Shown here piece by piece: positions 39,387-63,057 of a stretch of 64,000 bases of DNA (positions are counted from its first letter, which is position 1; the number at the start of each line of letters is the position of its first letter). The stretch spans positions 1,998,246 through 2,062,245 of the forward strand of contig JBNJNM010000013.1 of the NCBI GenBank assembly GCA_052426225.1. The letters run 5' to 3'. This DNA is from Zancudomyces culisetae HAW-14-8. Lineage: Eukaryota > Fungi > Kickxellomycota. The position numbers and the translations under genes are program-made. The notes under the pieces were generated by a model. It made no database searches. It was not told the DNA's origin and saw only the letters and a list, made by a program, of their open reading frames with translations.

Positions 39387-39809
39387 ATGGTAAACATTTT
39401 GTTGACAACCGCAGTTTTGATTGCCTCAAAGCTTGTAGCTGGTGCTAGCATTCCAGATACCCAGACAAATATTTCTAAAAGGCAAGACGACGACAATCGC
39501 AACATCTGCTATGGAGACAATAAAAAGCAATACCCTAACAAATTTCTAAATATTGAAATGTTTGCACAAAGGTCAAGGATAAATAGAATTGGTTTCAAAA
39601 CAATTAATCCAAATCGATGCTATGTCATGCCAACTACTGGTTCCTGCTTGCTTAATGGTGGTACGCCTGGTGAAGGAACAATAATGTTCTGCACTGGAAC
39701 CAACTGCGATGGTTACTGCCGGGCTCAACCAAGACAAGTCTGGTATACCCCCGGAGATATGCAGAAAGATATTGGAGGGCTTGCAAATTCAGTTTATTGG
39801 ACAATTTGA
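39387..39809 (+). CDS. Small secreted Cys-containing protein, paralogue of 14752
   Basis: MVNILLTTAVLIASKLVAGA signal, KR site, NPNRCY, GGTPGEGTIMFC, NCDGYC, SVYW. TATAAAA at 39277. Confidence 0.87.
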   Translation: MVNILLTTAVLIASKLVAGASIPDTQTNISKRQDDDNRNICYGDNKKQYPNKFLNIEMFAQRSRINRIGFKTINPNRCYVMPTTGSCLLNGGTPGEGTIMFCTGTNCDGYCRAQPRQVWYTPGDMQKDIGGLANSVYWTI

Positions 39810-41449
39810 TAAGTGATGAAAGTGCATTACTTCACGAGCCGTCAAGAACGCATTTAAATTTGCATAGTTACTCTTATTTTCATTATATCATTCACATTTA
39901 ATTTAGCTACTATTTTATAGCATAGCATAAAAAAACTTTACAAAAATATATTCTCAGAATTTGTTTTTATATTAAATTAAAGCTGATCTGAAGATCTTTG
40001 AAGTATATATTGTATTTTTAGTGATATTATAGACAAATTATAAAACAACTTAATATATCTATGGAGACCGCTTAACTCTAGATTTTTGGTAGTGAAGTAC
40101 CTAAAATGTAATTTAACTTTGTATATGAAATCAATTAGTCTATTAATTTTCTTAATGTAAATATGCTATTGTATCTAAAGTATATCGAACACATATGGAC
40201 TATCAAAAATTGTTATTAAAATGTATTCATTAATCGAGGAAAAACAGTGTAACTGATTTGAATCTTAAAGTAAATATCACTAAAATAAAAAGTTATACAA
40301 ATAAAAACCCCGATAAAATCATCTCATCTTAGCTTCTTTAATCTGTTGATTGTAGTACTAATTTTCATAGTTGCAGTCTATTGAGAAACCTAAAGTAGTT
40401 TAGATCAGACTCTATAGATGTTTTATTTTTGGTTGCTGTTTTAATCTAGTAAAAATGTTTTATTCCCTACTTGGAGGCTATTGGCTACTAAGATATACTC
40501 GAGTAAAACAACTATAGTTTATAATTAACAATATTGTGTACTATTATAATGTTCAGATACAACAAATTAACTTTTCTAAAAATTTTACTAATTTTATAGA
40601 ACAAACTCAAATGCATAACTGTCAAATAAGAGTATCAATAAAATTAACATACAAATTACAATTGATGAGAAATCCAATATGTTTAATACTTTGTTATTAA
40701 TGTATGCATCGTCTATTTAGGCTAAACTCTACTTTGTTCTCTCATAAGTAGATAATGAAATAGGCCTTGTATCATTTTTCAATATTTTAAAATATTCCAA
40801 CTATTAACATTCATATTATGAAATAAATTCAATAATTTCTCAAAAGTCGAGAAATTAATATTATTAATATATTATTTTCTTATTTATATAAAATTACACT
40901 TTTTCTACTGTTTAGTAAATCAAACTATTCTTGCTGTTCAGTTATACTTAACTTTCAAAAAGTATTAAAAGGTGCTTTATTAATTAAATTAAATCTAAAC
41001 CACTCCATTAATATACTTTGAACCTTTTTACATACTAACCAGAAATTTAAGTGAAAGGAAAAAGATAACCATTTATTTATAATGTAGTTATAGTTGGTAT
41101 AAGCTTTAAATAGTAGCGAATTCTCATACAGGCAGTAAAATTTAAAATTTGGGCCTTATTCAGGTGTTTTGATCTTAATTAAAAATTATCATTGGTAATT
41201 GACTTCAACATATCAAAAATAATAAATATAATTCTAGTAATCTTCGGATTAAAGTACTATGAAATTGATTAATGTTAGGTTTTAATTGAGTTTATTTAGA
41301 ATATTTATTTTGAAGAATATTAACTTCCTAAATGAAGAGAATATTTTTCACAGCCTCTTCAATCAATGCATCGTCGGTGTTTAAATACTTGAAGAGACAG
41401 GTGAAAAATAAGACAAAATATTTCATGTGCATGAAGTTACTTAACATTA

Positions 41450-42251
41450 TGTGATGTTTCAGGATGATATTCACATCCAGACATTTACATATAAGTTAAT
41501 CCCATTGGGAGTTTTTCTCCTAGATGTTAACGTGAATAATCACGTTAACATGATACGTTACTAATTTTGTGAATGTATCGTTGTGTGTTCACGTTCAATT
41601 AAATTAGTAATAAATTAATTTATTAATTAAAACTATTTAAGCTAAATTAAAATAACTAAATCATAACATTCCCCTGATTTCAGAACTTTTAGATCACCGC
41701 AATGATGCCAGAATATATACTAAAATAGATCTGAGAGGAGCATATAACTTAGTTCGCATGAAACCTGTTAGATACCAATATTATACACAATAATGATGGT
41801 ATTAACAAATTAACACACAGTTAATTTATAAAAGTTAAGATTAATTATGCTAGTTTAAAACACACAGTAATAATATAATATTAGTTAATAATATCTTTAT
41901 TATTGTTAAACGAGATTGACAAACTTAATTGTTCAATAAAGGGATTAGTATCACCTTTTATACAAAAAAGTTTGTACTAAAACTTTAGTATAAACTAAAA
42001 CTATTAATACAACTAATATTAATAAACAAATAAACAAATATCATTAATATACACAATATTAATAAAGATACATTTAATATTGATCATGTGTATCAATATT
42101 AATGTTTTAAACTAATAATTAATAATAATTAAATTTTATAAACTAATAATTAATTAATATTAATGATGCACATTTAATATCATTAATATTAATTAATACC
42201 ATATTGTATTTTAATATACAATATTGTTATGATACATGTGTATTCATAACA
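41450..42251 (+). mobile_element. Nested LTR-element debris: TG..CA segments around a Ty3/Gypsy RT fragment
   Basis: 41669-41765 translates [32 protein letters not shown]. It is flanked by tgtgatg..cataaca (41450-41668) and tgttag..cataaca (41766-42251). Confidence 0.6.
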
Positions 42252-42619
42252 CGAAATCCATCGAAAGAGAACTTCAGAGAAAAATATCTTATTCACTATT
42301 GAATATCATATTTTTCTAAATAATATAATAGTAATAAATAATTTAATCTTAAAATATTCAAGTCTTAACAATAATGAATAAAATCACTATAAAAGGTATT
42401 TGGTATATATAGCATAATTTTTGAAACTTGGTATCTGTTAATATTTTTTAAATACAAGATTAATATTTGGTTGATCAAACATAGTGCTAAGTAAATTTGT
42501 GATTAGGTTGGTAATTTGAATTTCCATAATTATTTATCAGAGTTTGTGAGGTTGATTTAAAGTTCTTCCGATTCATTGGAAAAATTACCTTGAAGACCGA
42601 CTTTCCGTGTTGGAGCATC

Positions 42620-45600
42620 TATAGGAATAGGATTGAGACTGGGTTTGAATCAGCCCTATAATTATCCTTGATATATTCGGCTTGGGCTTTTTTTAGCCTA
42701 AATTTTAGTAGGTAATCACCAAGTTTCGGTGATTTTTTACAAGCAATAATAAATCTTAAATTTTTACTTAGAGCAGTTTTGGTGCGTTGAGTTCCTGTAT
42801 GAATCTTTGTAATATTTGGTAGTTTGAATGTTTGTTGTAGAGTATTACTAATGGAACAATGTTTTTAGAAGGTTTATTGGTCGTTTTTAGCTATAATTTT
42901 CTAACATCGTATGTGTTTTTAATGAATATGTCATTTACAAATTTTATGTTATAAAATCGTGCTATTGTCATTCTATGAATAATTATCGAATATCAACAAA
43001 GTCATTATTATCTGTGCATTGTCATAATATCAGTTTAGTACACCAGATATAACTGCTTTTTTAGTAGAAATGCTGTGTTTATAAAAAAATGGTATTTATC
43101 TGTATAGATTAAAAGGTTTTTGATAGGTTTTGAAACTGATTTTAATTTCAGTATTAAAGTAAACAGTATTATCAAGGAAGTCTACAGTATCTGCTGAATT
43201 GATAGCGAGGGTCATATTTATTCCAGGGATGCTGTTGTTGGCGGTGTGTATAAGTTTGGATAAATTGTCTTTGTGAGTTACTGTTAGAAATGGCCAATTC
43301 CCGTTAATAATTATAGTTACATTTTGGCTTATGAAAAATTTAACCTATTATATTAATTCATTTCCGGCATTCGAAAATGTCATCCGACATGAAATTATGT
43401 TAGCAGAATACACCATCAAATATCAGAATTTATTTATAGAAAAATTACATAGAAAATTCAAGAAATTTTACAATTATTAAAATTATAATTAACCATGGTA
43501 AAACTGGATAGACATAATCCATAGAGAATTGTATATCTAAAATCCATGATTAAATTGATAAATAAAATCTATGCCAAAATCATAAAGTAAAATCTATGCT
43601 AAAATTGAAATACAAAATCAATGTTAAAATTTATAAACAAAATCAATGTAAATTGATATACAAATATAATGTTATAATCGATAATCTAAATACATGTTAA
43701 AATCAAAAAATGAAATGATAAGTTTACGATAAGTAGATACCTAATCTAATTAGATTATACATAATCTAATTTTTATTGCTAAAATATATTGTATTAATGT
43801 TTTGCTTCATACTCTAAATAATTGATAGTAATTTTATAAACCCTTCGAAATTCCGTTGGGTTACATCGGAATAAAATATAATTTATTAACTCATTTATAA
43901 ATATATTACTCTAAATACATACTTCATCTAATAAATATTAATCAAGCATAACTAATCCACGGTCCAAAGTTATAAGCAGCTCATTGTTTATAACAGTTTT
44001 CTAGAATTTATCGTTAATATATCTGTATTAATGAAGGCAAAATATTTTAAAATATTATCAATATTTGAAGGTATAGTATAGTTCATTTATTCTGCATTGG
44101 TGCCCATTGTGATAACAATAATATATTTAAATACATTTTTATGATACATAAAATAGTTGATTCACAAATGTAAATTGTGGCATCAGTTAGTTATTGAGAT
44201 TTGGTCAATTTAAGAATAGTTCTGTCAAAGTTTTTATTTGAAAAATTGAATTAAAGTTACAAATCGAGTGATCCTATGATGTAGTTATTGGGAATAACTT
44301 TGTTTTCAAGTTGTTTGATCAATTCTAAAAAATTTTTAGATTACTGGGTTTTCTTGTTCAATTAATATATTGATATTGTTTTAGATAGCTTCGTTGTTAG
44401 CCAATTGGTTGCTGATGTAATTGGTCGAAACTCAATTGGCGTTTTATGGATTATTAATTCTACGTAGAAATTCGGTAATTGGATATTATTGTCATTATGT
44501 AGTAGACTAGTTAGCATTTTAAATATTATAATGTAGAAAAGTTGTTAATTAGTATTTATAGTTTATTATAAATACTTGATCATTGATGTCATCTGAGTTA
44601 TTACGAATTTGTACATTATTGTTAGTGTTGTTTAATATTTTCAATACTTGTTTGTGATAATCTATTGTATCCATAATTACAGGGCCTATGTGAATATTGA
44701 ATTTATTATGTTAATACTTCCGTCATGGTTGATATCATTAATAACTTTTGGTATAAAGATTTAGTTTTCTCTGTGAGTTTAGGAGTGGTTGTATAAAATA
44801 ATTTTTACTCAAGCATTTCAATATAATTTCTTTATAATTTGTCATCAACGTTGTTTGAATAATATAACTTTTGGTAAAAAGAAGTGTGGTATTATAAAAA
44901 GAAAGGTCAATGTAATGTACTTCATTGTTAAGTAATTGAGGTATGTGTTTAATTCAATTGTTTAATATAAGCTGTTTACTATCAGATTTGGAAGTCATGT
45001 TGTGAACAAAAGTAAATATAGCTGAATAATTTTTAGTTGACTTTGTTGTATTTTTGGTAAAGTTACTTAGTAATTGTTGATGGTAATGATATTTGAAGTA
45101 AAAACTGTGTTTTACTTTCTTTTTGAATATTATGTTGTGATTCCTTCTTTGGCGCCATGTAAACTTTTGTATAGATTTGTGTTGTTAATTACTCTTTATT
45201 TATTGTTAATTGAATGTCTTTTGTTGGATTTGTAGTTTTTTTCTTTCCTTTATTGTTAGTTCTATTGTAGTATATTAGTGATATTTTGGTTTTGTTGGTT
45301 GATGGTTTCGACGCAATTTGTTGCCTTAATACATATCTTTGTCCTTTTAAACTATCTTGTGTATCTACGGTCATCGAGTTTTGTTCTAGTTCTAGTTTCT
45401 TTATAGCCTTCTTAGCTTCAGCAAAATTCTGATTTTTTAGTTTTCTTGAGTTGAAATTAATCTTAAAAATTTGAAGATAAATATAAAAGATATTGAGGAG
45501 GTCAGCTTCAAATTTTGTAATTGTAACAGCAAGTAAAGTATTAGAAGCAATGATTTTAAATCTAAAGTGAAGTTTGTATTGAGTTCTTTACTTTTAATGT
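42620..45600 (-). mobile_element. Decayed Penelope-like element (PLE) reverse transcriptase, no GIY-YIG seen
   Basis: Minus-strand motifs in order: IGPVIMDTIDY (~44670), PNFYVELIIHKTPIEFRPITS (~44420-44476), GSLD (~44270), ITMGTNA (~44100), YRYINDKF (~44004-44027), VDFLD (~43180), TYQKPFNLY (~43115), IIACKKSPKLGDYLL (~42710-42750). Boundaries are approximate. Confidence 0.8.
43290..44001. mobile_element. ~710-bp insertion splitting the PLE RT, with ~24-bp tandem repeats
   Basis: The PLE frame RYINDKF|LTVTHK is interrupted here. TAGAA lies at both 43285-43289 and 44002-44006. aaaatcwatgytaaaat-type repeats occur at ~43540-43705. Confidence 0.55.
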
Positions 45601-46289
45601 TTAATAGTGTCATGAACTTGTTTATTTTGGTGTAATTAGGTAATTATTAAGTACAACTATAAAATATATATTAATTGTGACACTTGTTGTCGATAAGTTT
45701 TTCTGAAGGCATAAAGAATGCTATTTAAACTTTTTGAATGTAATATAATAATTTATTATTAAAGACTAAAATGTTGCATAAATAGAAAGTAGTTAAAATT
45801 AATGAACTATTTAAAGAAAAGTTGTGTTTTGTGCTAGTTTCAATATTAAACATGTTTAAAATCATATTTCTGATTCATCCAAATCATATTTGATATTGTT
45901 TGTTGATTTAAATTTAAACTGTTTAATATTAGTTTATGATAGTATTCCCTCTCTTAGTGTCGATCTCTGAGCGACATTGGTTTATTCGGGTTTTCATTAT
46001 GGTACTTTTCCATAAGTTCTTTTGTATTTGTTAGATGTTCGGCTGGTTCCCAAGTTCTTTTGCTTGCGTCGTACCCTTTCCAGTCCACTAGATATTGTAG
46101 TTTATTATATTTAATACAACTGTCTAATATTTGTTCGACTTTGTATTCTGATATTCCATCAACTAGTACCGGTAATGGAGTTTCATGAATTCGGCCTTCA
46201 ATGGTGTTGTAAGTTACTATTACTAGAAGGAAAACGTGAAAGACAAGATGTAATTTCATAGTTGTAGAAAGTTGAAGTTCGTATGCTAC

Positions 46290-46429
46290 TGTCACAGAAC
46301 GAGTTTTATTAGTTAAACAGGTTGTAATTCTTAAGGAATTACAGCTAGGCAAATGTTATTAATTAAATACTAAGTAAATATTAGAATAAATGTTATGGGA
46401 GGTTAGATGTCACCTGATTGGCCATGACA
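46290..46429. mobile_element. 140-bp solo LTR inserted in the integrase
   Basis: TGTCAC...ATGACA termini and a perfect 5-bp TSD GCTAC (46285-46289, 46430-46434). It is absent from the sister copy at ~52080. Confidence 0.88.
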
Positions 46430-49400
46430 GCTACTTTGATTAATTTTTTAACTATTGTAAATGGACCTAATTTAGTATAATCTATTTAGTTATTTGGTCT
46501 GTTAGTTTTAATATATTTTCTATTCAACCAAGCTTTTGATCCTATATTAAACTCGAGTTCGGCTTGTCTGTTTTTATTATTAGTTTAGCATATCTTTCAT
46601 TTGATTTTTTATATTTTTTATAAGTTCCTTGTAAATTTGTGACATTTTCTGAATTAAATCTGTGATTATGGGCGAGTTACTGGGTGAAGTCAAAATATTT
46701 AGTCGAAATATTGAAGGATGATATCCAGTATAGCGTAGAATGGTGCAAATTTTGTAGTTGAGTGTTTTGAGTTATTATATGCAAATTCTGCGAGTGCTAA
46801 TAAATCATGCCAGATTGTTTGGTTGTAGTTACAATAAATTCTGATATACTGTTCTAAAACTTGGTTTACTCGTTCCGTTTGACCATCCGTTTGTATATGG
46901 TATGCTGTTGACATATTTAATTTTTTATTTAATACTTTGGTAATAGTATCCAAAATTTTGAAGTGAAGATAGAACCTCTATCAGAGAATATATCTTTTGG
47001 CAGTCCGTGAAGTTTAAATATGTTATTGATAAATAGTTTTGCTGTTTGTTGTTCGTTGATGTTGTTATTTGTTGGAATAAAATGCGCCATTTTTGTTAGT
47101 CTATCTACAATAACCAATACTGAATCGTAAGTTTGTGACAATGGTAACCCAACAATAAAATCCATAGAAATTGATTCCCACGGTTTATCTGGAATCTGTA
47201 AAGGTTGTAGTTGACCATATGGTTTGTGTCTTATCGGTTTACATCTGCAACATTGATCGCATGAGTTAATATAATTTTTGATCATTTTTCTCATTTTTGG
47301 CCAATAATAGTATCTTGAAATCAGTTCAAAGGTTTTAGAATGTCCGAAGTGTCCAGCAATAGGCGAATCGTGAAATTAATTGAGTAGTAGTAGTTTGATT
47401 TCAACGTTATCTGGAATGTATGTTTTACCTTTAAAAGTAAGTATTTCATTGTCGTATTTATAATCCTTTAGGTTTGAATATTCAGAGTTATATATACTGT
47501 TAATATGTTTCAATTTAGAAATAATGGAATTAACTTTAATATCTTTTTCGTAGCTACTATTAAATATAGTTTTATCAAAATTATTATAACCATTGGTTCT
47601 ACTGCTGCAATTATCTATTGTTCTGGCTTTAGCAAAGTTTTATTAGTACGTAGAGCGTCATCCCCATCCTTAGGCAAATGATCCGGGCGTCGGGACAAAG
47701 CATCGGGTTTCCCGTTAGATGAACCAGTTACGTATTTAATAATGAAATTATAATTTCCTAATAATTCTGCCCATTGTGCTTGACGCCTATACAAACTTTT
47801 AGTGGTAGTAAAATATTCTAGATTTTTATGATCAGTTAAAACCGTAATTTGATGTAATGCTCCTTCGAGGTATGACCTCTATTCTTTAAAAGCCTCAATT
47901 ATGGCTAACATTTCTTTATCGTAAATTTCGTAGTTGATTTCAGCAGGTTGTAACTTTCTGGAATAATATCTATTTGATGTAAATTGATATTATCGTTGCG
48001 TTGTGAAATAACTCCACCAATTGCGAAGTCTGATGCATCAGTTTCGATAGTAATTGATTTATTCGGATCAAAATATTTTAAAATAGGTGCAGTTGTAAAT
48101 GCTTTTTTGTATTGATCGAAAGAGTTTTGTGCTTCAGACTCCAGTTCCATTTTTCATTTTTTCGTAACAATTTTGTTATAGATGTCACAATCATTGAAAA
48201 ATTCATTATAAATTTTTTATAGAAATTTGCAAAACCAAGGAACTTTTGAATTTCTTTTATTGAGGTTGGTGCAGACCATGCAATTACAGCTATTGTCTTT
48301 GTTTTATCCATACTTACCCCTAGATCGGAAACAATATATCCCAAGAATTCGACTTTTGTTTTGTGAAATCGACATTTTTCCAGTTTAGCATAAAGTGAAT
48401 TATTCTGGAGTCTTCTTAATATATCTTTTACATGCTTAATATGGTCTTCGTATATTGTACTATAAACCAGTATATCATCTAAATATACTACTGCAAAACT
48501 ATCTAAGCAGTCAGATAATACATCAGTCATGAAATATTGAAACGTGCTGGATCATTGCAGAGTCCGAATGGCATAACCCTATAATCATAGACCGTATCTC
48601 GTACGGAATGCAGTATTCCATTATTCTCCCTTAGCGATTCTTATTAAATTATAAGCGCCTCTTAAATCGATTTTAGTTAATATTTTCGCTTGACTGAATC
48701 TGTCGAGTAACTCTCCGATTAAAGGTAAAGATACCTGATTTAATTGTCAAGTTATTTAATCCTCTATTATCAACGCATAATCTTAAAGATCCATCTTATT
48801 TTTTTACAAAAAGTATAGGCGAGCCAGCAGGAGATGATGAAGGATGAATAAAACCTTTGTCTAAATTTTTTTTCAAATATTCACGAAATGCTGCAAGTTC
48901 TGTTTCAGATAGTGATTAAATTGGTCCAAATGGTGGTTGTGAGCCTGGTGTTAACGAAATATTATGATCCTATGTACGATGAGGTGGTAAATTATTAGTT
49001 GCATATTCATCGAATACATCTTTAAATTCAGAACATTCCGATGGTATAGGATTTATTTCTGATTTTTCTGGAATTAATGTGCAAGTTATTGTGTGTGTAT
49101 AACATTGATTTTGTTGAATACTACATTTATTTTGGCAATATTCAGTTATGAAATACAACTTATCTAATTTCCCCTCTATGTGTGGATTATGGGTTCGCAG
49201 CCAGTTTATTCCAATAATTAATGGGTATTTTCCCAATATATTTACATCAAATGGTCTAGTTACGTGATAATTATAGGTGTTAAGTTGAATTGGTATTGTA
49301 TTGTGTGTTATGGAGCCTGACGAAATTCATCTTCCGTCAATTACTAGTAGCGGAAATAGTAATTTTTTTAATACTAATGGAATGTTATTAGTCTTAGCAA

Positions 49401-49589
49401 AAGTAGAATCAATGAAGCAATTAGTTGAAACCGAATCAATCATGGGAACGGTTTTTATCGGGTTATTGTTTACCCGAAGGGTTAATGATACTATATGATG
49501 AGAGTTAACTTTATTTGTTGACATAGTTAAATGTTCCAGGTCAGATTCATATTGATTGTGGAATTAATTTATAAGTTGCAGTCAGGTAT

Positions 49590-49790
49590 AGATTCAGGCT
49601 TAAATTCAGGCTTAAGTTCAGGCTTAAGTTCAGGTTTTGAGTGAAGTACGGGATTAGTTTTAATTATAAGTTAAGATATGGTTACAGGTTTAAGTTAAGG
49701 TTTAAGTTCAGGTTTAAGTTCAGGTTTGATTTCAGTATTAATTTCAGGTTTGACTTCAGATTTGGTTTCAGGATTAATTTCAGAGTTATA
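49590..49790 (-). repeat. 12-bp tandem repeat (TTCAGGYTTAAG) in the pol N-terminal linker
   Basis: Visible tandem units. The sister copy has a shorter version at ~55245-55375. Confidence 0.7.
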
Positions 49791-51272
49791 GTTGGATTAG
49801 TAGAATGTATCTTTTACATTTAATTCTGGTGTTAGATTGGTTATTTCAGTAGTGTTTATTTTATTGTGAAATTGTAAAGGTAGATTGTATACAGCTTGAT
49901 ATAAACTTCCGGATGTTTCATAGCGGCAATAATTAAGGAGTAAAATTTTTGATTGAAGTGGACGGTTTAGGATAATTAGATACGCTCAAGACTACGTCCG
50001 AAAATTGTCTTGAGCTTAATTGTTTTCCTTAATAATGCTTGCAGATATAGTATTTGGTACCTTTATTTGCGGGCGACGAGGACAAGATGATAATTCATGA
50101 TCAGGATTACCACAGTATAGACAAAGATTAAGGTCGCGGCGGCGTTGTTTTTCAGTCTGAGTGAGTGGTGGGCGATGAGATAAAGCTCCGTCAATTTCCA
50201 TTTGTTGCACCCGAGGCTGTGTTATTACTATTAAATTGTTTTTTGATGGTGTAGAGTAATCCAAATTTTGAGTGTGCATTGGGCGAGGGCAAAACGTTGT
50301 TTCAAGGTTTCTTTCAAATAGTCTGTTGTCAATTTTTATGGCGAGGTCTATAAATTCTGAAAAGTTTTCTGGTCTATCAAAACATGCTAATAAATCCTTA
50401 ATGTCTTTTTTAAGTCATTCATAAAATTGGCTACAGAGTGCTACGACATTCCAGGACATAAGTGTGGAAATACGACGAAATTCTGTATCATAGGTGGCTG
50501 CGGATCCCAACTGGCGAATTTTTCTGAGTTGACGTTCAACTGTCAAAGATTGGTGTGGATTTCCGAAAACACGATGAAGTTCGTTTATGAAAATGTCAAA
50601 ATTTTCCAGGATTGGTTCATGATCATTAGATTCTAGAAACGGTTGTAGCCACGAATAAGCAGGACCACAAAGGAAAGTAAAAGCAAAAATGACTTTCTGA
50701 GTATCTGTTGAAAATCTTGAGGGTTGAGCTTGTATGACTTGTTGGACTTGTGCTACAAAGTTTCTTAGTTGGTCTCTATTGCCACTAAAGTATTCAGGAT
50801 CTGCTACTCTTGGTTCTCTAGCCACTGGTAACACGTTTGCTTGATTATTTCTTAACATATTTAAGCGAAGCTGAAGATCGTCTAGTTGGGTTGCTGTCAT
50901 GATCCATTCATGACATTATTGCTATTTAAAATATGTTATTATAAATAGCAAATGTAAATTTATTAACATTTTCTCCGATTTATTTCTTACACCATAATTA
51001 AAAATTTATGGAGTAAGAATTAATAATTGTTAATAATTTGGTTTTACCACATATAATTAAATGTTAACTGTGGAGTTGACAGTTAAGATTATTTAGTTTA
51101 AATTATAGTTTAAGTTTAGATTATAGTATCATTTACAGTTTATTTTGTATATTGTAAAACTATATAAAAACAAAGATTTATTGCTTTGAGAAACTTTAGC
51201 AATATAATTCTTTTCATCTCATAGTAATTTATTAAATAAATCACAGCCATCGTTAATACAAATAGTACTTAG

Positions 51273-54200
51273 TGTCAAGTCATGACAGTTGCCATCCTAT
51301 GTAATTCATTAAAATGACTTCAATCATTGTTACTAGTGCATCAAGGTCTTTGTAATTATTCTTCGACATGATAGTAGTAGTTATTATATATTGATCTGAC
51401 AAACTCTATGAACTTATAATTTTGGTGTAATTTGGTGATTATTAAGTACTACTATACAATATATTTATTGTTAACACTAGATGTCAGATAAGTTTTTCTG
51501 AATGAATAAAGAATGCAATTAAAACTTTTTTTTTGTATTATATATATTTAGTATTTAATACTAACATGTTGCATAAATAGAAAGTAGTTAAAATTAATGA
51601 ACTATTTAAAGTAAAGTTGTGTTTGTACTAGTTTCAATATTAAACATGTTTAAAATCATATTTCTGATTCATCCAAACCATGTTTGATATTGTTTGTTGA
51701 TTTAAATTGAAACTGTTTAATATTAGTTTATGACAGTATTCCCTCTCTTAGTGTCGATCTCTGAGCGACATAGGTTTATTCATGTTTTCATTATGTTACT
51801 TTTCCACAAGTTCTTTTGTATTTGTTAGATGTTCGGCTGGTTCCCAAGTTCTTTCGCTTGCGTCGTACCCTTTCCAGTCCACTAGATATTGTAGTTTATT
51901 ATATTTAATACGACTGTCTAATATTTGTTCGACTTTGTATTCTGATATTCAATCAACTAGTACCGGTAATGGAGCTTCCTGAATTTGGCCTTCAATAGTG
52001 TTGTTAGTTACTGGTTCTAGAAGGGAAACGTGAAAGACAGGATGTAATTTCATAGTCGTAGAAAGTTGAAGTTCGTATGTTACTTTGCTTATTTTTATAA
52101 CTATTGTGAATGGACCTAATTTAGTATAATCTAGTTTGTTATTTGGGCTGTTAGTTTTAATTATTTTCTATTTAACCACACTTTTGATCCTATATTAAAC
52201 TCGGGTTCGGCTTGTCTGTTTTTATCATATGCTTTAGCATATCTTTCATTTGCATTTTTAATATTTTATATAAGTTCCTTGTAAATTTGTGACATTTACT
52301 GAGATAAATATGTGATTATGGACGAGTTACTGGGTGAAGTCAAAATATTTGATCGAAATATTGAAGGATGATAATCGGTATTAGCGTAGAATGGTGAAAA
52401 TTTTGTAGTTGAGTGTTTTCAGTAATTATATGCAAATTCTGCGAGTGCTAATAAATCATGCCAGTTTGTTTGGTTGTAGTTACAATAAATTCGGATATAC
52501 TGTTCTAAAACTTGGTTTACTCGTTCCGTTTGACCATCCGTTTGTATATGGTATGCTGTTGACATATTTAATATTATATTTAATACTTTGGTAATAGTAT
52601 CCAAAATTTTGAAGTGAAGATAGAACCTCTATCAGAGAATATATCTTTTGGCAGTCCGTGAAGTTTAAATATGTTATTGATAAATAGTTTTGCTGTTTGT
52701 TGTTCGTTGATGTTGTTATTTGTTGGAATAAAATGCGCCATTTTTGTTAGTCTATCTACAATAACCAATACTGAATCGTAAGTTTGTGACAATGGTAACC
52801 CAACAATAAAATCCATAGAAATTGATTCCCACGGTTTATCTGGAATCTGTAAAGGTTGTAGTTGACCATATGGTTTGTGTCTTATCGGTTTACATCTGCA
52901 ACATTGATCGCATGAGTTAATATAATTTTTAATCATTTTTTTCATTTTTGGCCAATAATAGTATCTGGAAATCAGTTCAAAGGTTTTAGAATGTCCGATG
53001 TGTCCAGAAATAGGCGAATCGTGAAATTGGTTGAGTAGTAGTAGTTTGATTTCAATGTTATCTGGAATGTATGTTTTACCTTTAAAAGTAAGTATTTCAT
53101 TGTCGTATTTATAATCCTTTAGGTTTGGATATTCAGAGTTAGATGAATTGTTAATATGTTTCAATTTAGAAATAATGGAAATAGATTTAATATCTTTTTC
53201 GTAGCTACTATTAAATATAGTTTTATCAAAATTATTATAACCATTGGTTCTACTGCTGCAATTATCTATTGTTCTGGCTTTAGCAAAGTTTTATTAGTAC
53301 GTAGAGCGTCATCCCGCTCCTTAGGCAAATGATCCGGGCGTCGGGACAAAGCATCGGGTATCCCGTTAGATGAACCAGTTGCGTATTTAATAATGAAATT
53401 ATAATTTCCTAATAATTCTGCCCATCGTGCTTGAAGCCTTTTCTTAGTATTAGTGGTAGTCAAATATTCTAGATTTTTATGGTCAGTTAAAACCGTAATT
53501 TGATGTAATGCTCCTTCGAGTTATGATCTCCTTTCTTTAAAAGCCTCAATTATGGCTAACGTTTCGTTATCGTAAATTTCGTAGTTGATTTCAGCAGGTT
53601 GTAACTTTCTGGAATAATATGCTAACGGGTGTAAATTGTTATTATCGTTGCGTTGTGATATAACTCCTTGAATTGCGAAGTCTGATGCATCAGTTTCGAT
53701 AGTAATTGATTTATTCGGATCAAAATATTTTAAAATAAGTGCAGTTGTAAATGCTTTTTTTAATTGATCGAAAGAGTTTTGTGCTTGAGTGCTCCAGCTC
53801 CATTTTTTATTTTTTCGTAACAATTTTGTTATAGATGTCACAATCATTATAAAATTCATTATAAAATTTCTATAGAAATTTACAAAACCAAGGAACGTTT
53901 GAATTACTATTATTGAGGTTGGTGTAGGCCATGCACTACAGCTATTGTCTTTGTTATATCCATACTTACCCCTTTATCGGAAACAATATATCCCAAGAAT
54001 TCGACTTCTGTTTTGTGAAATCGACATTTTTCCAGTTTAGCATAAAGTGAATTATTCTGGAGTCTTCTTAATATATCTTTTACATGCTTAATATGGTCTT
54101 CTAATGTTGTACTATAAACCAGTATATCATAAAATATACTACTGCAAAACTATCTAAGCAGTCTGATAATACATCATTCATGAAATATTGAAACGATGCT

Positions 54201-57200
54201 GGAGCATTGCAGAGTCCGAATGGCATAACTCTATATTCTTAGTGACCGTATCTCATACGGAATGCATTATTCCATTCTTCTCCCTTAGCCTTTCTTATTA
54301 AATTATTAGCGCCTCTTAAATCGATTTTAGTTAATATTTTCGCTTGTCTGAATCTGTCGAGTATCACTCCGATTAAATTTAAGAGATACCTGTTTTTATA
54401 GTCAAGTTATTTAATCCTCTATATCAACGCATTATCTTAAAGATCCAACTTTCTTTTTTACAAAAAGTATAGGAGAGCCAGCAGGAGATGATGAAATATG
54501 AATAAAACCTTTTCTAAATTTTCTTTCAAATATTCACAAAGTGCTGCGAGTTCTGTATCAGATAGTGAATAAATTGGTCCAAATGGTGGTTGTGAGCCTG
54601 GTTTTAACGAAATATTATGATCATATGTACGATGAGGTGGTAAAAGATTAGTTGCTTTTTCGTCGAATACATCTTTAAATTCAGAATATTCCGATGGTAT
54701 AGGAGTTATTTCTGATTTTCTGGAATTAATGTGCAAGTTATTGTGTGTGTAGAACATTGATTTTGTTGTTTAATACAATTATTTTGGCAATATTCTGATA
54801 TGAAATAAAACTTATCTAAATACCCCTCTAAATCTATATTATGGGTTCTCAGCCAGTTTATTCAATAATTACAGGGTATTTTCCCAATTTGGTTACATCA
54901 AAAGATATAATTACGTAATAATTATAGGTGTTAAGTTGAAGAGGTATTCTATTGTGTGTTATGGAGCCTGACGAAATTAATCTTCCGTAATTACTAGTAG
55001 CGGAATTGGTAATTTTTTTAATACTAATGGAATGATATTAGTATTGGCAAAAGTAAAATCAATGAAGCTATTAGTTGCACCCGAATCAATCATGGCAACG
55101 GTTTTTATCGGGTTATTGTTTACCCGAAGGGTTACTGATACTATAAGGTGCGCGTTAACTTTATTTGTTGACATATTTAAATGTTCCAGGTCAAGATTCT
55201 TATTGATTGTGGAATTGATTTTTAAGTTGCAGTCAGGTATAGATCAGGCTTGAGTTCAGGCATAATTTCAGGTTATGAGTAAAGTACAGGTTTAGTTTTA
55301 ATTATAAGTTCAGATTTGATTTCAGGTTTAAGTTCAGGTTTGATTTCAGATTTGGTTTCATGTTTATTTTCAGAGTTATAGTTGGATTAGTAAATGTATT
55401 TTTTACATTAATTTCTGGTGTTAGTTTGGTTATTTCAGTAGTGTTTATATTATTGTTAAATTGTAAAGGTAGATTTAATTCAGCTTGATTTAAACTTCCG
55501 GATGTTTCATTAGCGGCAATACTTAAAGGGTAAAAATTATGATTGAAGTGGACGGTTTAGGATAATAAGATACGCTCAAGACTACATCCGAAAATTGTCT
55601 TGAGCTTAATTGTTTTACTTAATAATGCTTGCAGATATAGGATTTGGTACCTTTAGTAGCGGGCGACGAGGACAAGATGAAATGACATGATCAGGATTAC
55701 CACAGTATAGACAAAGATTAAGGTCGCGGCGGCGTTGTTTTTCAGTCTGAGTGAGTGGTGGGCGACGAGATAAAGTTCCGTCAATTTCCATTTGTTGCAC
55801 CCGAGGCTGTGTTAAACTATTAAATTGTTTCTTGATGGTGTAGAGTTAACCAAATTTTGAATATGCATTGGGCGAGAGCAAAACGTTTTTTCAAGGTTTT
55901 TTCAAATAGTCTGTTGTCAATTTTTATGGCGAGGTCAATAAATTCTGAAAAGTTGTCTGGTCTATCGAAACGGGCTAATAAATCCATAATGTCTTTTTTA
56001 AGTCATTCATAAAATTGGCTACAGAGTGCTGCGTCATTCCAGTACATAAGTGTCGAAATACGACAAAATTCAGTAGCATAGGTGGCTGCGGATCCCAACT
56101 GGCGAAGTTTTCAGAGTTGACGTTCAGCTGTCGAAGATTGGTGTGGATATCCTAAAACAGATAAAGTTCGTTTATGAAAATGTCAAAATTTTCCAGGGTT
56201 GGTTCATGATCATTAGATTCTAGAATCGGTTGTAGCCACGAGAAAGCAGGACCACGAAGGAACGTAAAAGCAAAAATGGCTTTCTGAGTATCTGTTGAAA
56301 ATCTTGAGGGTTGAGCTTGTATGACTAGTTGGAATTGTGCTATAAAGTTTCTTAGTTGGTCTCTATTGCCACTAAAGTATTCAGGATCTGCTACATTTGG
56401 TTCTCTAGCCACTGGTAACTCGTTTGCTTGATTATTTCTTAACATATTTAAGCGGCACTGAAGATCGTCTAGTTGGGTTGCTGTCATGATCCATTCATGA
56501 CATTATTGCTATAAATAATATGTTATTAAAAATTGCCAATTTAATATTATTAACGTTTTCTCCGCTTTAATACTTAGTCCATAAATTATTAATTATGTAG
56601 TAAGAATAAATTTTAATATTAATTTGGTTTTACCCCATAATATTAAATGTTAACTGTGGAGTTGACAGTTAATATTATTTAGTTTTAAAGTTATAGTTAT
56701 AAGTATAGCATTTATTAAGTTTTACAATTAATTTTGTATATTGTTAAACTATATAAGGACAATGATTTTATTGCTTTAGGAAACTTTAGCAATAAAATAC
56801 TTTATATCTCATATTATTTTATTAAATAAATCATATCATAGTTAATACAAATAGTACTTAGTGACGAGTTGTGACATGGAGCTAATTTTATGTAATTGAT
56901 TATAATGTCTTACAATCATTGATACTAGTGCATCAAGGTCTATGTAATTATTCACTGACATGATAGTAGAATTTAATATATATTGATCTGACAAACTCTA
57001 TGAACTTATAATTTTGGTGTAATTTGGTGATTATTAAGTACTACTATACAATATATTTATTGTTAACATTTGTTGTCAAATAAGTTTTTCTGAATGAATA
57101 AAGAATGCTATTAAAACTTTTTGTTTGTATTATATCTATTTAGTATTAAAGACTAAAATGTTGGATAAATAGAAAGTAGTTAATATTAATGAACTATTTA

Positions 57201-57327
57201 AACTAAAGTTGTGTTTTGTGCTAGTTTCATTATTAACATGTTTAAAATCATATTACAGATTCATCCAAATCATGTTTGATATTGTTTGTTGATTTAAATT
57301 GAAACTGTTTAATATTAGTTTATGACA
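51273..57327 (-). mobile_element. Degenerate Ty3/Gypsy chromovirus, family B copy 2 (shares LTR 51273-51735 with copy 1)
   Basis: Same gag/pol fragments (gag start MTATQLDDLQ at 56487). PPT follows 51735. 5' LTR at 56862-57327. Confidence 0.93.
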
Positions 57328-57878
57328 ATCTGTTGGATTTTTTCATTGGTGGCTTTTTTAATTATCGTAAAACAGTGAGCTTCAATGATTTTAGCTAGCT
57401 TTTGAGTTCCAGGAGCGTTACTGTTTTTAACTGCAATGAATTTATGTGTGTTAGTGTCAAGATCTGGAGTCAGGAGAGTTATATTTATTATTATTAAAGT
57501 TTATTGTATGAATGTATACAAGATACTAGATACTGAATCCAAGACAGGAAATTTGTACCCTTTTTATACTTTTTTCCAGCCTTGGTTTTTGAACATAATC
57601 ACTATAAAAACTGCGGAATAGCTAAAAATTCAAGCTAAAGAAAAACGTGTTTGATTACTAATCAAATTGGATTAGTAATCAAACAAAATTCAAACTCGAA
57701 TGCTATTAAAATTAAACATGTGAAAATTATTACGTAATAAAAATTAATAAATAATGTGAATGTTCGGAAATGTTCTAGAATGTTTCCCAACATTCTAAAC
57801 ATTACTGCGGAATAAAATCAGATGATTCTAGAACGTTTTCGAACATGCTAGAATCAGTTCATGACACGACCTCCCCTC

Positions 57879-60800
57879 TTAAGGCTGAGCTCCGTGAAGC
57901 ATTTGTGGTGGCTTTGGTTTTTCAGGATGGTGACGATGGAATTCAGTGACAAGATATTTTGCATTTGCTAAGTCAGAATATGTTTGCCAGGTACGTTCAG
58001 TGTCTGGGTATCCTTTCCAGTGTACCAGGTATTTGACAGTTCTACCAAATATTTTACTGTCTAGGATTTTCTCAACTTCATATTCTTCTTGACCATCAAT
58101 GATCACAGGTGGAAGCGGTTTTGATAGTCTGTCTGGGATCAGATCTGGTTTACAAGGTTCAAGGAGATTGACGTGGAATACTGGGTGAATCTTCATTGTG
58201 TGTGGTAGCTGAAGTTTGTATGATCTTTGTCCAATCTTTTCCAATACTTTGAATGGACCAAGTTTCCGATAGTCAAGCTTCTTGCTTGGTCTTTGAGTCC
58301 TGATGTTTTTAGTTGAGAGATAGACAAGATCACCAATGTTGAAGTCAGGTTGTGATGATACTTTTCGGTTGTAGTATTTCTCATGGTCTTCAAGGGCAAG
58401 GGTGATGTTAAACTTCAGTTCTTGGTGGATATCAGATAGTCGTTTGGATCTATCAGAGGAGGCAGGATTTAAAACTTGAGTACGAGGGATTATGACTGAG
58501 AAGCGTGGATGGAAGCCATAGTTGGCGTAGAAAGGTGTGGTTTTAGTAGAAGCATGAGATGTGTTGTTGTAGGCGAATTCAGCAATTGGTAACCACTTTG
58601 ACCAATCAGTTTGTTGGTAATCAATGTAGCACCTGAGATACTGTTCCAATACTGAGTTTACGCGTTCAGTTTGTCCATCTGTCTGAGGATGGAATGCGGT
58701 GGACATTTTCTGTTCAATATTCAGTGATTTCATTAGAGTACGCATGAATGATGAATTGAAGGTTACACCTCTATCTGATACGATGTCTTTAGGGAGTCCA
58801 TGTTTGCAGAAGACATGTTGGATAAACAGATCTGCAGTACCTTCAGCATCAATTTCATTGGTTGTGGGAACAAAATGCGCCATCTTGGTAAGGCGATCCA
58901 CAAATACACAGATTGCAGTAAAGTTATTGGATGGAGGTAGCTGAGTGATGAAGTCGACAGAAACAGATGACCAAGGTGAATCAGGAACGGGAAGTGGAGC
59001 GAGGTAGCCATATGGTTTATGGCGAGAGGATTTGTTGCGTTGACAGGTATCGCAACCAGAGATGTAGTCTTTGATATATTTTCTCATGGTTGGCCAGTAA
59101 AAGTTGCGAGATACAAGTTCGTATGTCTTTGCATTTCCAAAGTGGCCGGCAGCAGGGGAATCATGGCATTCAATCAGAATTGTTCTTTTGATGTTGTCGT
59201 CTGAGGGGATACAGATTAGTCCATCATAGTGCAGAAGATTGTCAACAAGAGCGAACTTTTCATGGGAATCAGGTTTCTTGGATAAGTCAGTGTAAATGGG
59301 TCCAAAGTACGTGTCTTTGGGTTGTAGTGACTTGATGTTGTTCATGAGCGTGGAGGACAAAGGTTCAACAGGTGTACTAGTCATGGACTTCAAGAAGATT
59401 TCAGGAGGCAGCAAAGTTATTTTGTTTTGGTCAGTACGGGAGTCACCCCCCTTCCAAGGTTGGTCTTTCCGAGAAAGAGCATCGGCGGCAGTGTTCTGTT
59501 TTCCAGGGCGGTACTTGATGACAAAGTTGAAGTTACTGAGGTATTCTGACCATCTGACTTGGCGGCGACTAAGATTTCTGGTAGTGGAGAAGTATTCCAA
59601 GTTTTTATGGTCGGTCATAACAACGGTTGGGTGTACAGAAAATTCAAGGTAGTGACGCCAGTGAGCAAAAGCGTCGATAATTGCTAACAGTTCCTTATCA
59701 TAGATTTGATAATTCACTTCAGCAGGCAGGAGTTTCCGGGAGTAGTATGCAACAGGGTGGAGTTGTCCCTCGTTGTCATACTGGCTGCAAATGGCACCTA
59801 ATGCAAAATCTGATGCATCGGTTTCGATGATACAAGGCTGGTCAGGATTGTAGTGAGCTAAGACTGGGTTACTGATCATGGTTTCTTTTAGCAAGGCGAA
59901 AGCTTCTTCAGCTTTGGGTGTCCACTGGAATTGAACACCTTTTTTCAACAAGGCGGTAAGTGGCAGAGATATCTTGGAGTAGTTCAGAATAAAACGGCGG
60001 TAGAAGTTTGTAAGGCCAAGGAATACCTGAACGTCACGGACACAAGTTGGTGTCTTCCATTCGGTGACGCTGGATACTTTTGATGGATCCATAGAGATTC
60101 CGTTGGGGCCAATTACAAAACCGAGGAACTGTACTGATTGTACATCAAACTCACATTTCTCTAGCTTGAGGGTGAGATTGTGTTCCTGAAGTTTCTTCAA
60201 GACAAGGCAGACGTGGTTATAGTGCTTATCGATATCATCTGAGTAGATTAACAGATCATCGATGTACACAACAAGGAATTGATCAATGTATTCACGGAAG
60301 AGATCGTTAACAAAGGACTGGAACGTGGCTGGAGCATTCATAAGGCCAAACGGCATGACCTTATACTCGAAGTGGCCGTAGCGTGTACGAAACGCGGTCT
60401 TCCATTCTTCACCAGGCGAGATCCTGATCATGTGGTATGCGGATTTCATATCCAGCTTGGTGAATATCTTGGCTTTGCCAAGCCGATCCAAGGTTTCAGA
60501 GATGAGTGGCAAGGCTGCACGGTTGGGGACAGTGATCTTATTCAGGGCTCTATAGTCGACGCACAACCGGAGACTACCATCTTTCTTTTTTACAAATAGG
60601 ACGGGAGCCCCAGCCGGGGATTCAGAGCGTTGGATAAAACCATTGGCTAGGTTTTCCTGAATGTAGTCGTACAGGGTCTTTAGTTCCAATTGGGAGAGGT
60701 TGTACAATGGGCCATATGGTATCTTTGAGTCAGGAAGCAAAGGAATGGTATGATCATATGGACGATGTTCAGGCAGTTTGGCAGATTGGGATTCAGAGAA

Positions 60801-61496
60801 GACAGATTCAAACATTTTATACTTTTCAGGGATTACAGGAGTAACAGGGTTTTTAAGAGAAGATTCAGAGACAAGACAGAGATTTTCACAAGATTTAGGA
60901 GCTACAAGAGATTCAAGATTGTTCACGGTAATTGCACCAGCATAGACAGTGTCTGGTGCCTTCAGATGTTCTTTAAACTGGTTTGAGCCCACAAGAGAGA
61001 TGTCTAGGTTGACATGGTTGGGCCCACAAGAAGACAAGGTACACGGCAGATGGACTACGTTTTCAGTCCAGTTGATGTCAGGATTGTGTTGTTGAAGCCA
61101 GGAAAGACCAAGGATGATTGGTGAAGATCCAAGATCTAGTTGTTGCAGATAGATACTTTCGAGATGGTTATCGTTGATTTTTAGTGTTACTTGGGAGGCA
61201 GAGTTGGATCTAAGCTTTGATCCGTCAGCGAGCGTGATTGTCATTTTTCTAGATATAGATGGTAGATTGTTTTTTAGAGCAAAGGTGGCGTCAATGAACG
61301 AGGACGAAGCACCAGAATCAACCATAGCGTAGGTTTTGATGTGGTGGTGCTTGGACAAGATGGTTACAGGAATGGTCAAGGTGTTTGGTTTATCAGGAGA
61401 TTGGGTGTCAGAAACAGGAGTGGTTACAGTGGCGTGGGGACTGGCTAAGTTGCCCAATAGGTGTCCCTTACTGTCTACTGGGCGGTGTCGTTTTCC
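57879..61496 (-). CDS. pol: Pol polyprotein (protease, RT, RNase H, integrase, chromodomain), reached by -1 frameshift
   Basis: VDSGA, YIDD, ETDASD, HHCC, SDRG/QTERVN, GPF and EYEVEKILD..YLVHWKGY. The frame is open from the slippery site GGAAAAC at 61496-61490. Confidence 0.96.
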   Translation of the reverse strand, partial: GKRHRPVDSKGHLLGNLASPHATVTTPVSDTQSPDKPNTLTIPVTILSKHHHIKTYAMVDSGASSSFIDATFALKNNLPSISRKMTITLADGSKLRSNSASQVTLKINDNHLESIYLQQLDLGSSPIILGLSWLQQHNPDINWTENVVHLPCTLSSCGPNHVNLDISLVGSNQFKEHLKAPDTVYAGAITVNNLESLVAPKSCENLCLVSESSLKNPVTPVIPEKYKMFESVFSESQSAKLPEHRPYDHTIPLLPDSKIPYGPLYNLSQLELKTLYDYIQENLANGFIQRSESPAGAPVLFVKKKDGSLRLCVDYRALNKITVPNRAALPLISETLDRLGKAKIFTKLDMKSAYHMIRISPGEEWKTAFRTRYGHFEYKVMPFGLMNAPATFQSFVNDLFREYIDQFLVVYIDDLLIYSDDIDKHYNHVCLVLKKLQEHNLTLKLEKCEFDVQSVQFLGFVIGPNGISMDPSKVSSVTEWKTPTCVRDVQVFLGLTNFYRRFILNYSKISLPLTALLKKGVQFQWTPKAEEAFALLKETMISNPVLAHYNPDQPCIIETDASDFALGAICSQYDNEGQLHPVAYYSRKLLPAEVNYQIYDKELLAIIDAFAHWRHYLEFSVHPTVVMTDHKNLEYFSTTRNLSRRQVRWSEYLSNFNFVIKYRPGKQNTAADALSRKDQPWKGGDSRTDQNKITLLPPEIFLKSMTSTPVEPLSSTLMNNIKSLQPKDTYFGPIYTDLSKKPDSHEKFALVDNLLHYDGLICIPSDDNIKRTILIECHDSPAAGHFGNAKTYELVSRNFYWPTMRKYIKDYISGCDTCQRNKSSRHKPYGYLAPLPVPDSPWSSVSVDFITQLPPSNNFTAICVFVDRLTKMAHFVPTTNEIDAEGTADLFIQHVFCKHGLPKDIVSDRGVTFNSSFMRTLMKSLNIEQKMSTAFHPQTDGQTERVNSVLEQYLRCYIDYQQTDWSKWLPIAEFAYNNTSHASTKTTPFYANYGFHPRFSVIIPRTQVLNPASSDRSKRLSDIHQELKFNITLALEDHEKYYNRKVSSQPDFNIGDLVYLSTKNIRTQRPSKKLDYRKLGPFKVLEKIGQRSYKLQLPHTMKIHPVFHVNLLEPCKPDLIPDRLSKPLPPVIIDGQEEYEVEKILDSKIFGRTVKYLVHWKGYPDTERTWQTYSDLANAKYLVTEFHRHHPEKPKPPQMLHGAQP
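61437..61496 (-). promoter_or_regulatory. -1 ribosomal frameshift signal: G GAA AAC plus H-type pseudoknot
   Basis: Stem 1 is GCCCAGTAG/CTATTGGGC. Loop GGGAC can pair with the downstream GTCCC. Confidence 0.8.
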
Positions 61497-62694
61497 TGTA
61501 TTGGTGTAATGCTGGAGATGTTGTGACGTTTCTTTGGACAGTTGATGTTGAAATGGTCATTACCGCCACAATAGAGACAGAGGTTGTTTTCGATACGGTA
61601 TGCCCTTTGAGCAGGAGTAAGTGGTGGTCTTCTAGTCGATGAAGCGGTACTGAGATCCATTGGTTGAGGTCCATCACTATTAGCTGGTGGAGTGGTAGAT
61701 GGTGCAGAAACAGGTGAAGCAAACGGGTTGTAAGCAGTGGGTTTGGGTGGCATAGTTGCAGTGGGGTTAACTGGAGGTTGACGACGTAGTGGATGGCTGA
61801 AGAGGCGGTTGTCGATCTGGATGGCTGTAGAGATCAGGGTATCGATGTCTTCTATTGGTTCTCTACGGTTGAGTTCTTGGGATACGTTGTACTTGAGACC
61901 GGATAGAAACTGTGAGATCAAAGGTGGTTGGTTCCAGTCAATTAACATCTGTAGGCGTCTAAACTCGGTGGCATATGCGGCAACGGAAGTGGTTTGGCGG
62001 AGTTGGCGGATTGCCCTATCACATTCTCAATAGGGTTGGGATCACCAAAGGCACGAGTGATAGTTTCTTTAAACAGATTGTAGTTGGAGAGGATGGCAGG
62101 ACGATCAGACTGTGGAAGGTTTGCTTTCATGAGGTAAGGTTCCATGTAACTGAATGGTGTGCCTGAGAGGTAGGAGATGGCATACAAGACTTTACTTGAG
62201 TCTGTGTTGAATTTATCGGGTGAAGCGGCAAAGACGAGAGCAAGCTGTGAAAAGAAGTTGGAACAGGCGGAGGGTTTTCCTGAAAATGTGTCTGGGTGTC
62301 TGACTTTGATACTAGGTTCAGAAGTACTAGCAACTTTGGTGGCACGGTTTTCAGTTATATAAAGTATGACTTCGTTCCTGAGGGTACTGAGCTGGTCCTG
62401 AAGGGATTGGATTTCCAACTGGTTGGCCTGTATGGCGCTTTGGGTCAGCTGGTCTGAATTCTGGATATCGGACTGGAGGTTTTTCATGGAGTCAAGAATG
62501 GTCTGGATGGACTTGGTGGTGTCTGCTTTGACCTTGTCATAAATTTTCTTGGATACTGTGGCAGGGTGTTCCTTGATGGCAGACTCGGCTTTTTCTACTC
62601 TTATTAGTAGTTGCTGGAGGGCGTCTTTAACTGCTGGTAGGGTCACGGCGGCTTTGTTGAGGAATTCAACTTGTTCTGGGCTAAACGGTTCCAT
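61475..62694 (-). CDS. gag: Gag with one frameshift near 62025
   Basis: PDTFSG..FGDPNP, then a shifted frame CDRAIRQLRQTTSVAAYATEF..GPQPMDL..LCLYCGGNDH..QENDTAQ*. Confidence 0.88.
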
Positions 62695-62743
62695 GGATTA
62701 AATACTTAGGCTGGTGTCAGAAAATAATAAATATAATATTTTG

Positions 62744-62752
62744 ATCTAGTAT
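62744..62752 (-). promoter_or_regulatory. Non-tRNA (self-priming-type) primer binding site
   Basis: ATACTAGAT sits 2 nt after the 5' LTR and is complementary to ATCTAGTAT at 62831-62823, ~37 nt downstream of TATAAAAA (62868-62861). Confidence 0.65.
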
Positions 62753-63057
62753 AGTGTCAAGATCTGGAGTCAGGAGAGTTATATTTATTATTATTAAAGT
62801 TTATTGTATGAATGTATACAAGATACTAGATACTGAATCCAAGACAGGAAAATTGTACCCTTTTTATACTTTTTTCCAGCCTTGGTTTTTGAACATAATC
62901 ACTATGAAAACTGCGGAATAGCTAAAAATTCAAGCTAAAGAAAAACGCGTCTGATTACTAATCAAATTGGATTAGTAATCAAACAAAATTCAAACTCGAA
63001 TGCTATTAAAATTAAACATGTGAAAATTATTACGTAATAAAAATTAATAAATAATGT

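Follow-up and report, generated by a model that had tools for sequence, protein, structure and literature searches.

The window analysed here comprised 64,000 nucleotides of the Zancudomyces culisetae HAW-14-8 assembly (C13:1998246-2062245) and reached the right end of contig C13. It contained the decayed remains of a putative reverse transcriptase (RT) of the Penelope-like element (PLE) type, referred to as the relic in the following. The relic was located on the minus strand, was split into two halves and was AT-rich throughout (42353-45607, 24-25% GC). Its 5' half (44002-45607) had a GC content of approximately 25% and contained numerous stops and frameshifts. It comprised a basic, coil-like N-terminal region, a candidate RT1-2 block with the string HKTPIEFRPITS (44413-44448) and a candidate RT5 block, or motif C, with the string RYINDKF (44004-44024). 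The 3' half (42353-43281) was represented by a single reading frame without frameshift and with 14 stops. It held VDFLDNTV as a candidate for RT6-7 (43162-43185), a thumb-like stretch and IIACKKSPKLGDYLL (42706-42750) as the last recognisable block, followed by a tail of approximately 340 bp. At position 42352, a homology breakpoint, the window parted from most other subtelomeric copies.

The two halves were separated by a 720-bp dispersed repeat (43282-44001, strand not assigned), which was inserted directly after RT motif C. More than 30 copies of this repeat were present in the genome, showing 66-79% identity and consistent ends (query 1609-1616 and 2322-2333). A 25-bp tandem array was located within it at 43527-43703 by Tandem Repeats Finder (TRF). 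For the 720-bp repeat, neither terminal inverted repeats nor a target duplication could be clearly defined. The string TTAACG was considered as a target duplication and rejected, as it is internal to the dispersed repeat.

On the telomeric side, an older chromovirus was nested in the relic (45608-57327, minus strand). It formed a tandem of 11.7 kb with the structure LTR-int-LTR-int-LTR (LTR, long terminal repeat), in which the three LTR copies had spacings of 5795 and 5592 bp. At most other chromosome ends, it was a single element of approximately 5.9 kb. It was followed by a 127-bp spacer (57328-57454, minus strand), which is pre-insertion sequence formerly 5' of the relic. Between spacer and telomere lay a young chromovirus that was apparently intact (57455-63166, minus strand). 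It carried a 1192-aa pol open reading frame with RVT_1, RNase H, integrase and chromodomain, and its LTR pair was 99% identical. The telomere (63167-64000, plus strand) made up the last 834 bases, with 19 ATAGGG variant units (63168-63287) and then, up to the end of the contig, 119 TTAGGG units. Telomere-like repeats were absent from window positions 1-63000. An initial annotation, made from the sequence alone, had described a relic whose 5' end faces the telomere, and this was confirmed by (TTAGGG)n at 63264-64000. This is the orientation that priming on a chromosome end would be expected to produce. The spacer also had the properties given there, being open on the minus strand and ending in GTTAG on the plus strand.

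Reverse-transcriptase motifs in the relic

Candidate RT motifs were evaluated with nine short PLE consensus blocks (N1, DKG, RT1-2, RT3, RT4, RT5, RT7 and two thumb blocks), which were scored ungapped in all frames using BLOSUM62. Significance was calculated against first-order Markov shuffles and combined over the nine blocks by Fisher's method. These consensus blocks represent a lead and not a reference. In all six frames of the 64-kb window, the best match to RT1-2 was HKTPIEFRPITS at 44413-44448, with a score of 32 compared to 24 for the runner-up. RYINDKF (44004-44024) was the best match to RT5 across the same search space, and VDFLDNTV (43162-43185) was the second-best match to RT7. All three were on the minus strand and in the correct order. 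Their spacing amounted to approximately 141 aa from RT1-2 to RT5 and approximately 40 aa from RT5 to FLD, in agreement with PLE RTs when the 720-bp insert is left out.

In the shuffle test, two of the nine blocks were individually significant, RT1-2 with p = 0.002 and RT5 with p = 0.003-0.005. The Fisher combination for the relic sense strand resulted in p = 3e-4. As controls, the relic antisense strand and a further six segments of the window gave values of 0.27-0.97, and two Ty3/gypsy pol regions gave 0.46 and 1.0. The negative result for the Ty3/gypsy regions indicated that the test does not detect just any RT. Overall, the RT-motif signal was only modestly above chance. For RT1-2 with its K-x5-RPI spacing, and for RT5 in the form RY(V/I)(D/N)D-x-F, PLE RTs and TERT are presumably a better fit than the RTs of long interspersed nuclear elements (LINEs) or LTR elements. 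Taken by its motifs, the relic is quite probably the remnant of a PLE-type RT.

The strings on which the initial annotation had based an ordered set of PLE RT motifs were all present on the minus strand, and no database method recognised an RT in them. Its motif C was probably misplaced. The string MSDDI was rejected as RT motif C, as it lies within the 720-bp insert.

Pfam searches with 18 stop-to-stop pieces from the window and better-preserved copies returned chance matches only, with neither RVT_1 nor GIY-YIG among them. Pieces of 102 and 150 aa gave nothing or a chance DegT match in the protein-language-model atlas. PDB sequence searches with two pieces and a 12-copy profile returned no RT or TERT. 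Profile A1, built from 12 natural copies, was compared with 1.84 billion protein representatives using hmmsearch and obtained 0 matches at E <= 1e-3. The AlphaFold2 model of A1 had a predicted local distance difference test (pLDDT) value of 57 and no meaningful match in the PDB with Foldseek. In the 102-aa piece used for AlphaFold2 and A1, the first 40 or so residues derive from the 720-bp insert and not from the RT. The RVT_1 search of the whole genome yielded 605 LTR-element candidates, among which the relic was not scored.

These blank results of the database, profile and fold searches are what would be expected if no RT were present at all and the motifs were pattern-matching in translations of an AT-rich, non-coding subtelomeric repeat, which are rich in N, I, K and F. 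The weak stop depletion, with 15 stops against approximately 24 expected in 311 codons (best frame, 42353-43289), points in the same direction. So does the tail of the relic, where two frames could each be read by eye as GIY-YIG-like, so that such matches arise easily. An origin without any RT is nevertheless improbable. It would have to accommodate the calibrated motif test with its clean negative controls, and two blocks that ranked first in six frames of 64 kb with the right order, strand and spacing. Furthermore, the relic sense strand was A-rich and G-poor and shared this composition with the neighbouring retroelements.

Other hallmarks of endonuclease-bearing PLEs, namely a CX2-5CxxC linker, CCHH and GIY-YIG, were not detectable in the relic. 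In the genome, PF01541 (GIY-YIG) matched only at C18 and C14:367784, with no match near any relic copy. A GIY or YIG block was absent from the window tail after 42706-42750 and from seven other tails (p = 0.19-0.99), which reach 1.4-1.9 kb further than the window tail. An open 96-aa tail piece remained blank in Pfam. The two tail readings considered as a decayed GIY-YIG (SYRCSNTES...IGRTLNQPHKL and SVFKV...FKSTSQTL) were rejected, as the two frames were equally readable and neither passed the shuffle test. The proposed lack of GIY-YIG after the last motif is therefore supported only to the extent that sequence in such a state of decay permits, the power of the PF01541 and tail tests being low.

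Relic copies at other chromosome ends

A DNA search of the genome identified relic copies with 85-98% identity at approximately 19 contig ends. These were, with L and R for left and right, C6L, C7L/R, C8L/R, C9L, C11L/R, C12L/R, C13L/R, C14 (end side unassigned), C15L/R, C21L/R and C23L/R. The copies were located 7-27 kb from the contig ends. Left ends carried them on the plus strand and right ends on the minus strand, so that the 5' side faced the telomere throughout. At internal sites, the DNA search detected no relic copies, and internal matches consisted solely of the 720-bp dispersed repeat. A protein-level genome search with an 82-aa piece added nothing to the known copies. All copies found at the DNA and protein level were dead, and intact copies, for which the initial annotation had proposed a genome search, were not among them.

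Second, partial copies were present at two of these contigs. C7:1109973-1110736 comprised the 5' 770 bp in the same orientation and distal to the full copy. C21:3408878-3411161 comprised an internal part of 2.3 kb in the same orientation, approximately 11 kb proximal. Telomeric repeats were not seen in the 1.5-kb flanks of this C21 partial copy.

The relic copies shared their lesions. The 720-bp insert was present at the identical place in all nine full-length copies. Near the telomere, the 127-bp spacer was found at 10 of 10 left contig ends with 88-100% identity, and the insertion site of the older chromovirus was identical at all ten. At the six left ends where the start of the relic fell within the 10 kb covered, the relic started one chromovirus length inward of the spacer. 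The chromovirus was flanked on both sides by the 5-bp target duplication CTGAT at four left ends (L027-L030), so that spacer and relic were once contiguous and the insertion happened once. At L027, an open frame of approximately 110 codons spanned the spacer-relic junction. On the question raised by the initial annotation, whether the spacer belongs to the PLE, the CTGAT duplication at other ends thereby showed spacer and relic to be the same pre-insertion sequence.

Nine left ends showed one and the same telomere junction, consisting of (CCCTAA)n, (CCCTAT)4-48, CCC[G/A]AAATCAATCG..., approximately 165 bp and the spacer. At nine ends, the variant telomeric repeats began approximately 290 bp upstream of the N-terminal region of the relic. 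Within the 3' half, read in the window's frame, 11 of 14 stops recurred in all nine aligned copies (window and eight others). On the proximal side, most other copies stayed homologous to one another over at least 1.4 kb, which takes them into a Tc1/mariner-like transposase. This transposase was missing from the window, where homology ended at 42352. The next 12 kb of the window (30000-42352) showed mosaic matches to other subtelomeres with 82-96% identity, and the proximal homology with other subtelomeres extended over tens of kb.

With the same element order and polarity, shared lesions and mosaic homology inward, the copies showed the features of a subtelomeric segmental duplication. The shared insert, chromovirus site, telomere junction and stops imply that the element was dead and invaded before the block was spread by recombination. 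The enrichment at approximately 19 ends in one polarity goes back to a single ancestral event whose product was multiplied by subtelomeric duplication, and not to repeated terminal retrotransposition. The initial annotation had postulated a telomeric retroelement system, which is contradicted by the death of every copy found and by their common insert, chromovirus site, junction and stops. Enrichment at chromosome ends in the same polarity did exist, with the 5' end distal and no internal copies, and the ends did not represent independent events. Independent insertions with variable 5' truncation were likewise not observed, given one 5' junction at nine ends and shared lesions, and telomeric repeats occurred on the 5' side only instead of on both sides.

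At most other ends, approximately 1.1 kb separated the relic from the Tc1/mariner-like DDE transposase on its proximal side (L003 5780-6199, L006 5625-6176 and L007 5614-6225, among others).

Terminal arrangement of C13-right and C8-left

The end represented by the window was near-identical to C8-left. The relic was 98% and the spacer 100% identical between the two, and both carried the same tandem chromovirus and the same young chromovirus. The terminal 25 kb or so was common to both (window 40900-64000 and C8:1-25500), with 96-100% identity in the sampled stretches. This identity points to a recent exchange between the two chromosome ends. The approximately 165 bp found at nine other ends were lacking at C13-right and C8-left. 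The young chromovirus was placed exactly between the variant telomeric repeats and the spacer (57450-57459 and 63162-63171), and the same arrangement was present at C8-left (L034 1185-7040). Its flanks read GTTAG next to the spacer and GATAG next to the telomere, and they matched in four of five positions.

In the lineage of C13-right and C8-left, the older chromovirus became tandem. The simplest history would then include the loss of the terminal 165 bp or so and the formation of a new telomere junction at GTTAG. Subsequently, the young chromovirus may have integrated at this junction, duplicating 5 bp, one of which changed later. Alternatively, recombination between two LTR elements may have made the terminal arrangement of the two ends.

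The 5'-truncated and capped appearance of the window end is a secondary, local event and not a signature of retrotransposition. The 5'-truncated, telomere-capped PLE of the initial annotation was consequently correct in one respect, as the relic abuts telomeric repeats when the nested LTR elements are disregarded. The capped end as such was secondary and shared only with C8-left. The spacer could not be retained as the original truncated end, as nine other ends carried approximately 165 bp more before the telomere.

The ten left ends had the same layout, with canonical telomeric repeats followed by variant units. The ATAGGG variant units are probably part of the duplicated subtelomere, since a canonical telomerase template would not make them. 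At every telomere examined (63167-63287 and the first 1.2-3.3 kb of L026-L035), 1.2-2 kb of canonical TTAGGG repeats were observed, with a base block of 4-48 ATAGGG units that sometimes included other variants.

Origin of the relic and comparison with known elements

PLEs lacking an endonuclease (EN-minus) are the closest transposon relatives of telomerase. Coprina was reportedly described by Gladyshev and Arkhipova in 2007 as a group of EN-minus PLEs of fungi. At fungal chromosome ends, EN-minus PLEs are well documented in both basidiomycetes and ascomycetes. They are represented by Coprina in basidiomycetes, and nearly every end is occupied in Tuber and Agaricus (PMC13159263, PMC8557442, PMC7473861). 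Coprina-1_Alen was found at 13 ends in one isolate of Ascochyta lentis, with telomeric repeats on both sides and with transcribed elements (PMC8557442, PMC13159263, PMC7473861). A literature search found no paper that ties Zancudomyces to PLEs.

The likeliest origin, at about even chances, is that the relic is the fossil of an EN-minus, Coprina-like PLE that was attached to an ancestral chromosome end. A terminal origin is favoured because the telomere junction lies approximately 290 bp from the N-terminal region, no endonuclease was detectable and internal copies were absent. Long ago, a single copy would have joined a chromosome end with its 3' side facing inward, and telomeric repeats would have capped its outer 5' end. 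The relic then decayed, as seen from at least 11 stops and 24% GC, and was hit by the 720-bp repeat and by the chromovirus with the target duplication CTGAT. Only after these events were the composite block and neighbouring sequence copied onto approximately 19 chromosome ends. This spread occurred by recombination between subtelomeres, through break-induced replication or gene conversion, and not by retrotransposition. Today, no protein is made from the relic, and its role is only that of shared subtelomeric homology. The locus can be read as a dated series of events that starts with the relic and the 720-bp insert, continues with the chromovirus and the spread, and ends with the terminal loss and the young chromovirus.

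Several results weighed against a telomere-attached PLE. The consensus blocks are a lead and not a reference, as described above, the thumb blocks failed the rigid motif test, and no sequence, profile or fold search recognised an RT in the relic. A missing endonuclease is weak evidence in so decayed a sequence. A hammerhead ribozyme was not found with Rfam in the window at 40000-46500 (E <= 10) or at 12 other loci (gathering score), and the telomere-proximal 600 bp of L027 (1200-1800) contained none at E <= 10. Among PLEs, only Naiads and most Chlamys lack the hammerhead ribozyme motif in their terminal repeats (PMC8557442), and in the relic it could have been erased by decay. A pseudo-LTR was not detected, with nothing above chance when the 300-bp 5' region was compared with the 3' regions of nine copies by blastn. 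Telomeric repeats were absent from the 3' side in the 1.5-kb flanks of 12 loci (L001-L012). All copies go back to one event, so that the 'correct' orientation amounts to a single observation for which the prior was 50%. Hallmarks of Athena and Coprina were thus lacking. The 3' junction had no telomeric repeats, reverse-complement telomeric repeats accompanied by a hammerhead ribozyme were absent, and variable truncation of the 5' end was not seen.

The same results bear on another origin, in which a fragment of a PLE-type or other RT was by chance present in the ancestral subtelomere after internal insertion, possibly via an endonuclease that has since decayed. Erosion or rearrangement would have brought the telomere beside the fragment, and the block would then have spread by subtelomeric duplication. 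The polarity would in this case be a coin toss decided by one event, and the lack of 3' telomeric repeats, hammerhead ribozyme and pseudo-LTR would be unsurprising. Terminal loss with a new telomere junction was indeed visible in the C13-right/C8-left lineage, where approximately 165 bp were missing, and the subtelomere collected transposons in general, among them chromoviruses, a Tc1-like element and the 720-bp repeat. A chance fragment is nonetheless rather unlikely. Only approximately 290 bp separated the telomere junction from the N-terminal region downstream, which is where an element of nearly full length should begin, and neither an endonuclease signal in the seven tails nor a relic copy at an internal site was detected.

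The likeness to Coprina comprises PLE-type RT blocks with an undetectable GIY-YIG, a location confined to chromosome ends with an outward-facing 5' end and telomeric repeats abutting the 5' side, and the occupation of most chromosome ends as in Tuber and Agaricus. In contrast to Coprina, all relic copies found were dead and shared nested insertions, stops and one telomere junction, so that they spread as DNA. Proximal telomeric repeats, hammerhead ribozyme and terminal direct repeats were missing. Terminal position, polarity and lack of a detectable endonuclease were also shared with Athena and the Terminons of bdelloid rotifers. However, Athena forms arrays of variably 5'-truncated copies with short telomeric stretches between them and extra open reading frames, none of which was seen here. 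Endonuclease-bearing (EN+) Penelope, Neptune and Nematis elements resembled the relic in the order of the RT blocks and in the RT1-2 spacing HK-x3-P-x-RPI-x-S. In the relic, a CX2-5CxxC linker, CCHH and GIY-YIG were not detectable, and dispersed internal copies were not found.

The block behaves today like a subtelomeric repeat of the Y'/X type with a dead retroelement core. Like the Y' and X elements of yeast, it was a block of fixed order and fixed polarity beside the telomere on most ends, was homogenised by recombination and showed mosaic homology tens of kb inward. Unlike in yeast, its core was a decayed RT of putative retrotransposon origin riddled with LTR elements and not a helicase gene. 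It is conceivable, at somewhat less than even chances, that nearly every subtelomere scaffold in this early-diverging fungus descends from one telomere-attached EN-minus PLE. If so, terminal retrotransposition of the Coprina type would extend outside Dikarya and would be of greater age in fungi, and a terminal retroelement would have been domesticated as passive subtelomeric homology. In terms of method, an enrichment at ends in one polarity looked like targeted terminal transposition and was explained by the copying of one dead composite block.

In the alignment of the nine copies, the differences were mostly A>T (304) and T>A (249), compared with 126 C>T and 78 G>A. This excess of transversions stems either from a mutation spectrum that is out of the ordinary or from an artefact of aligning AT-rich sequence.

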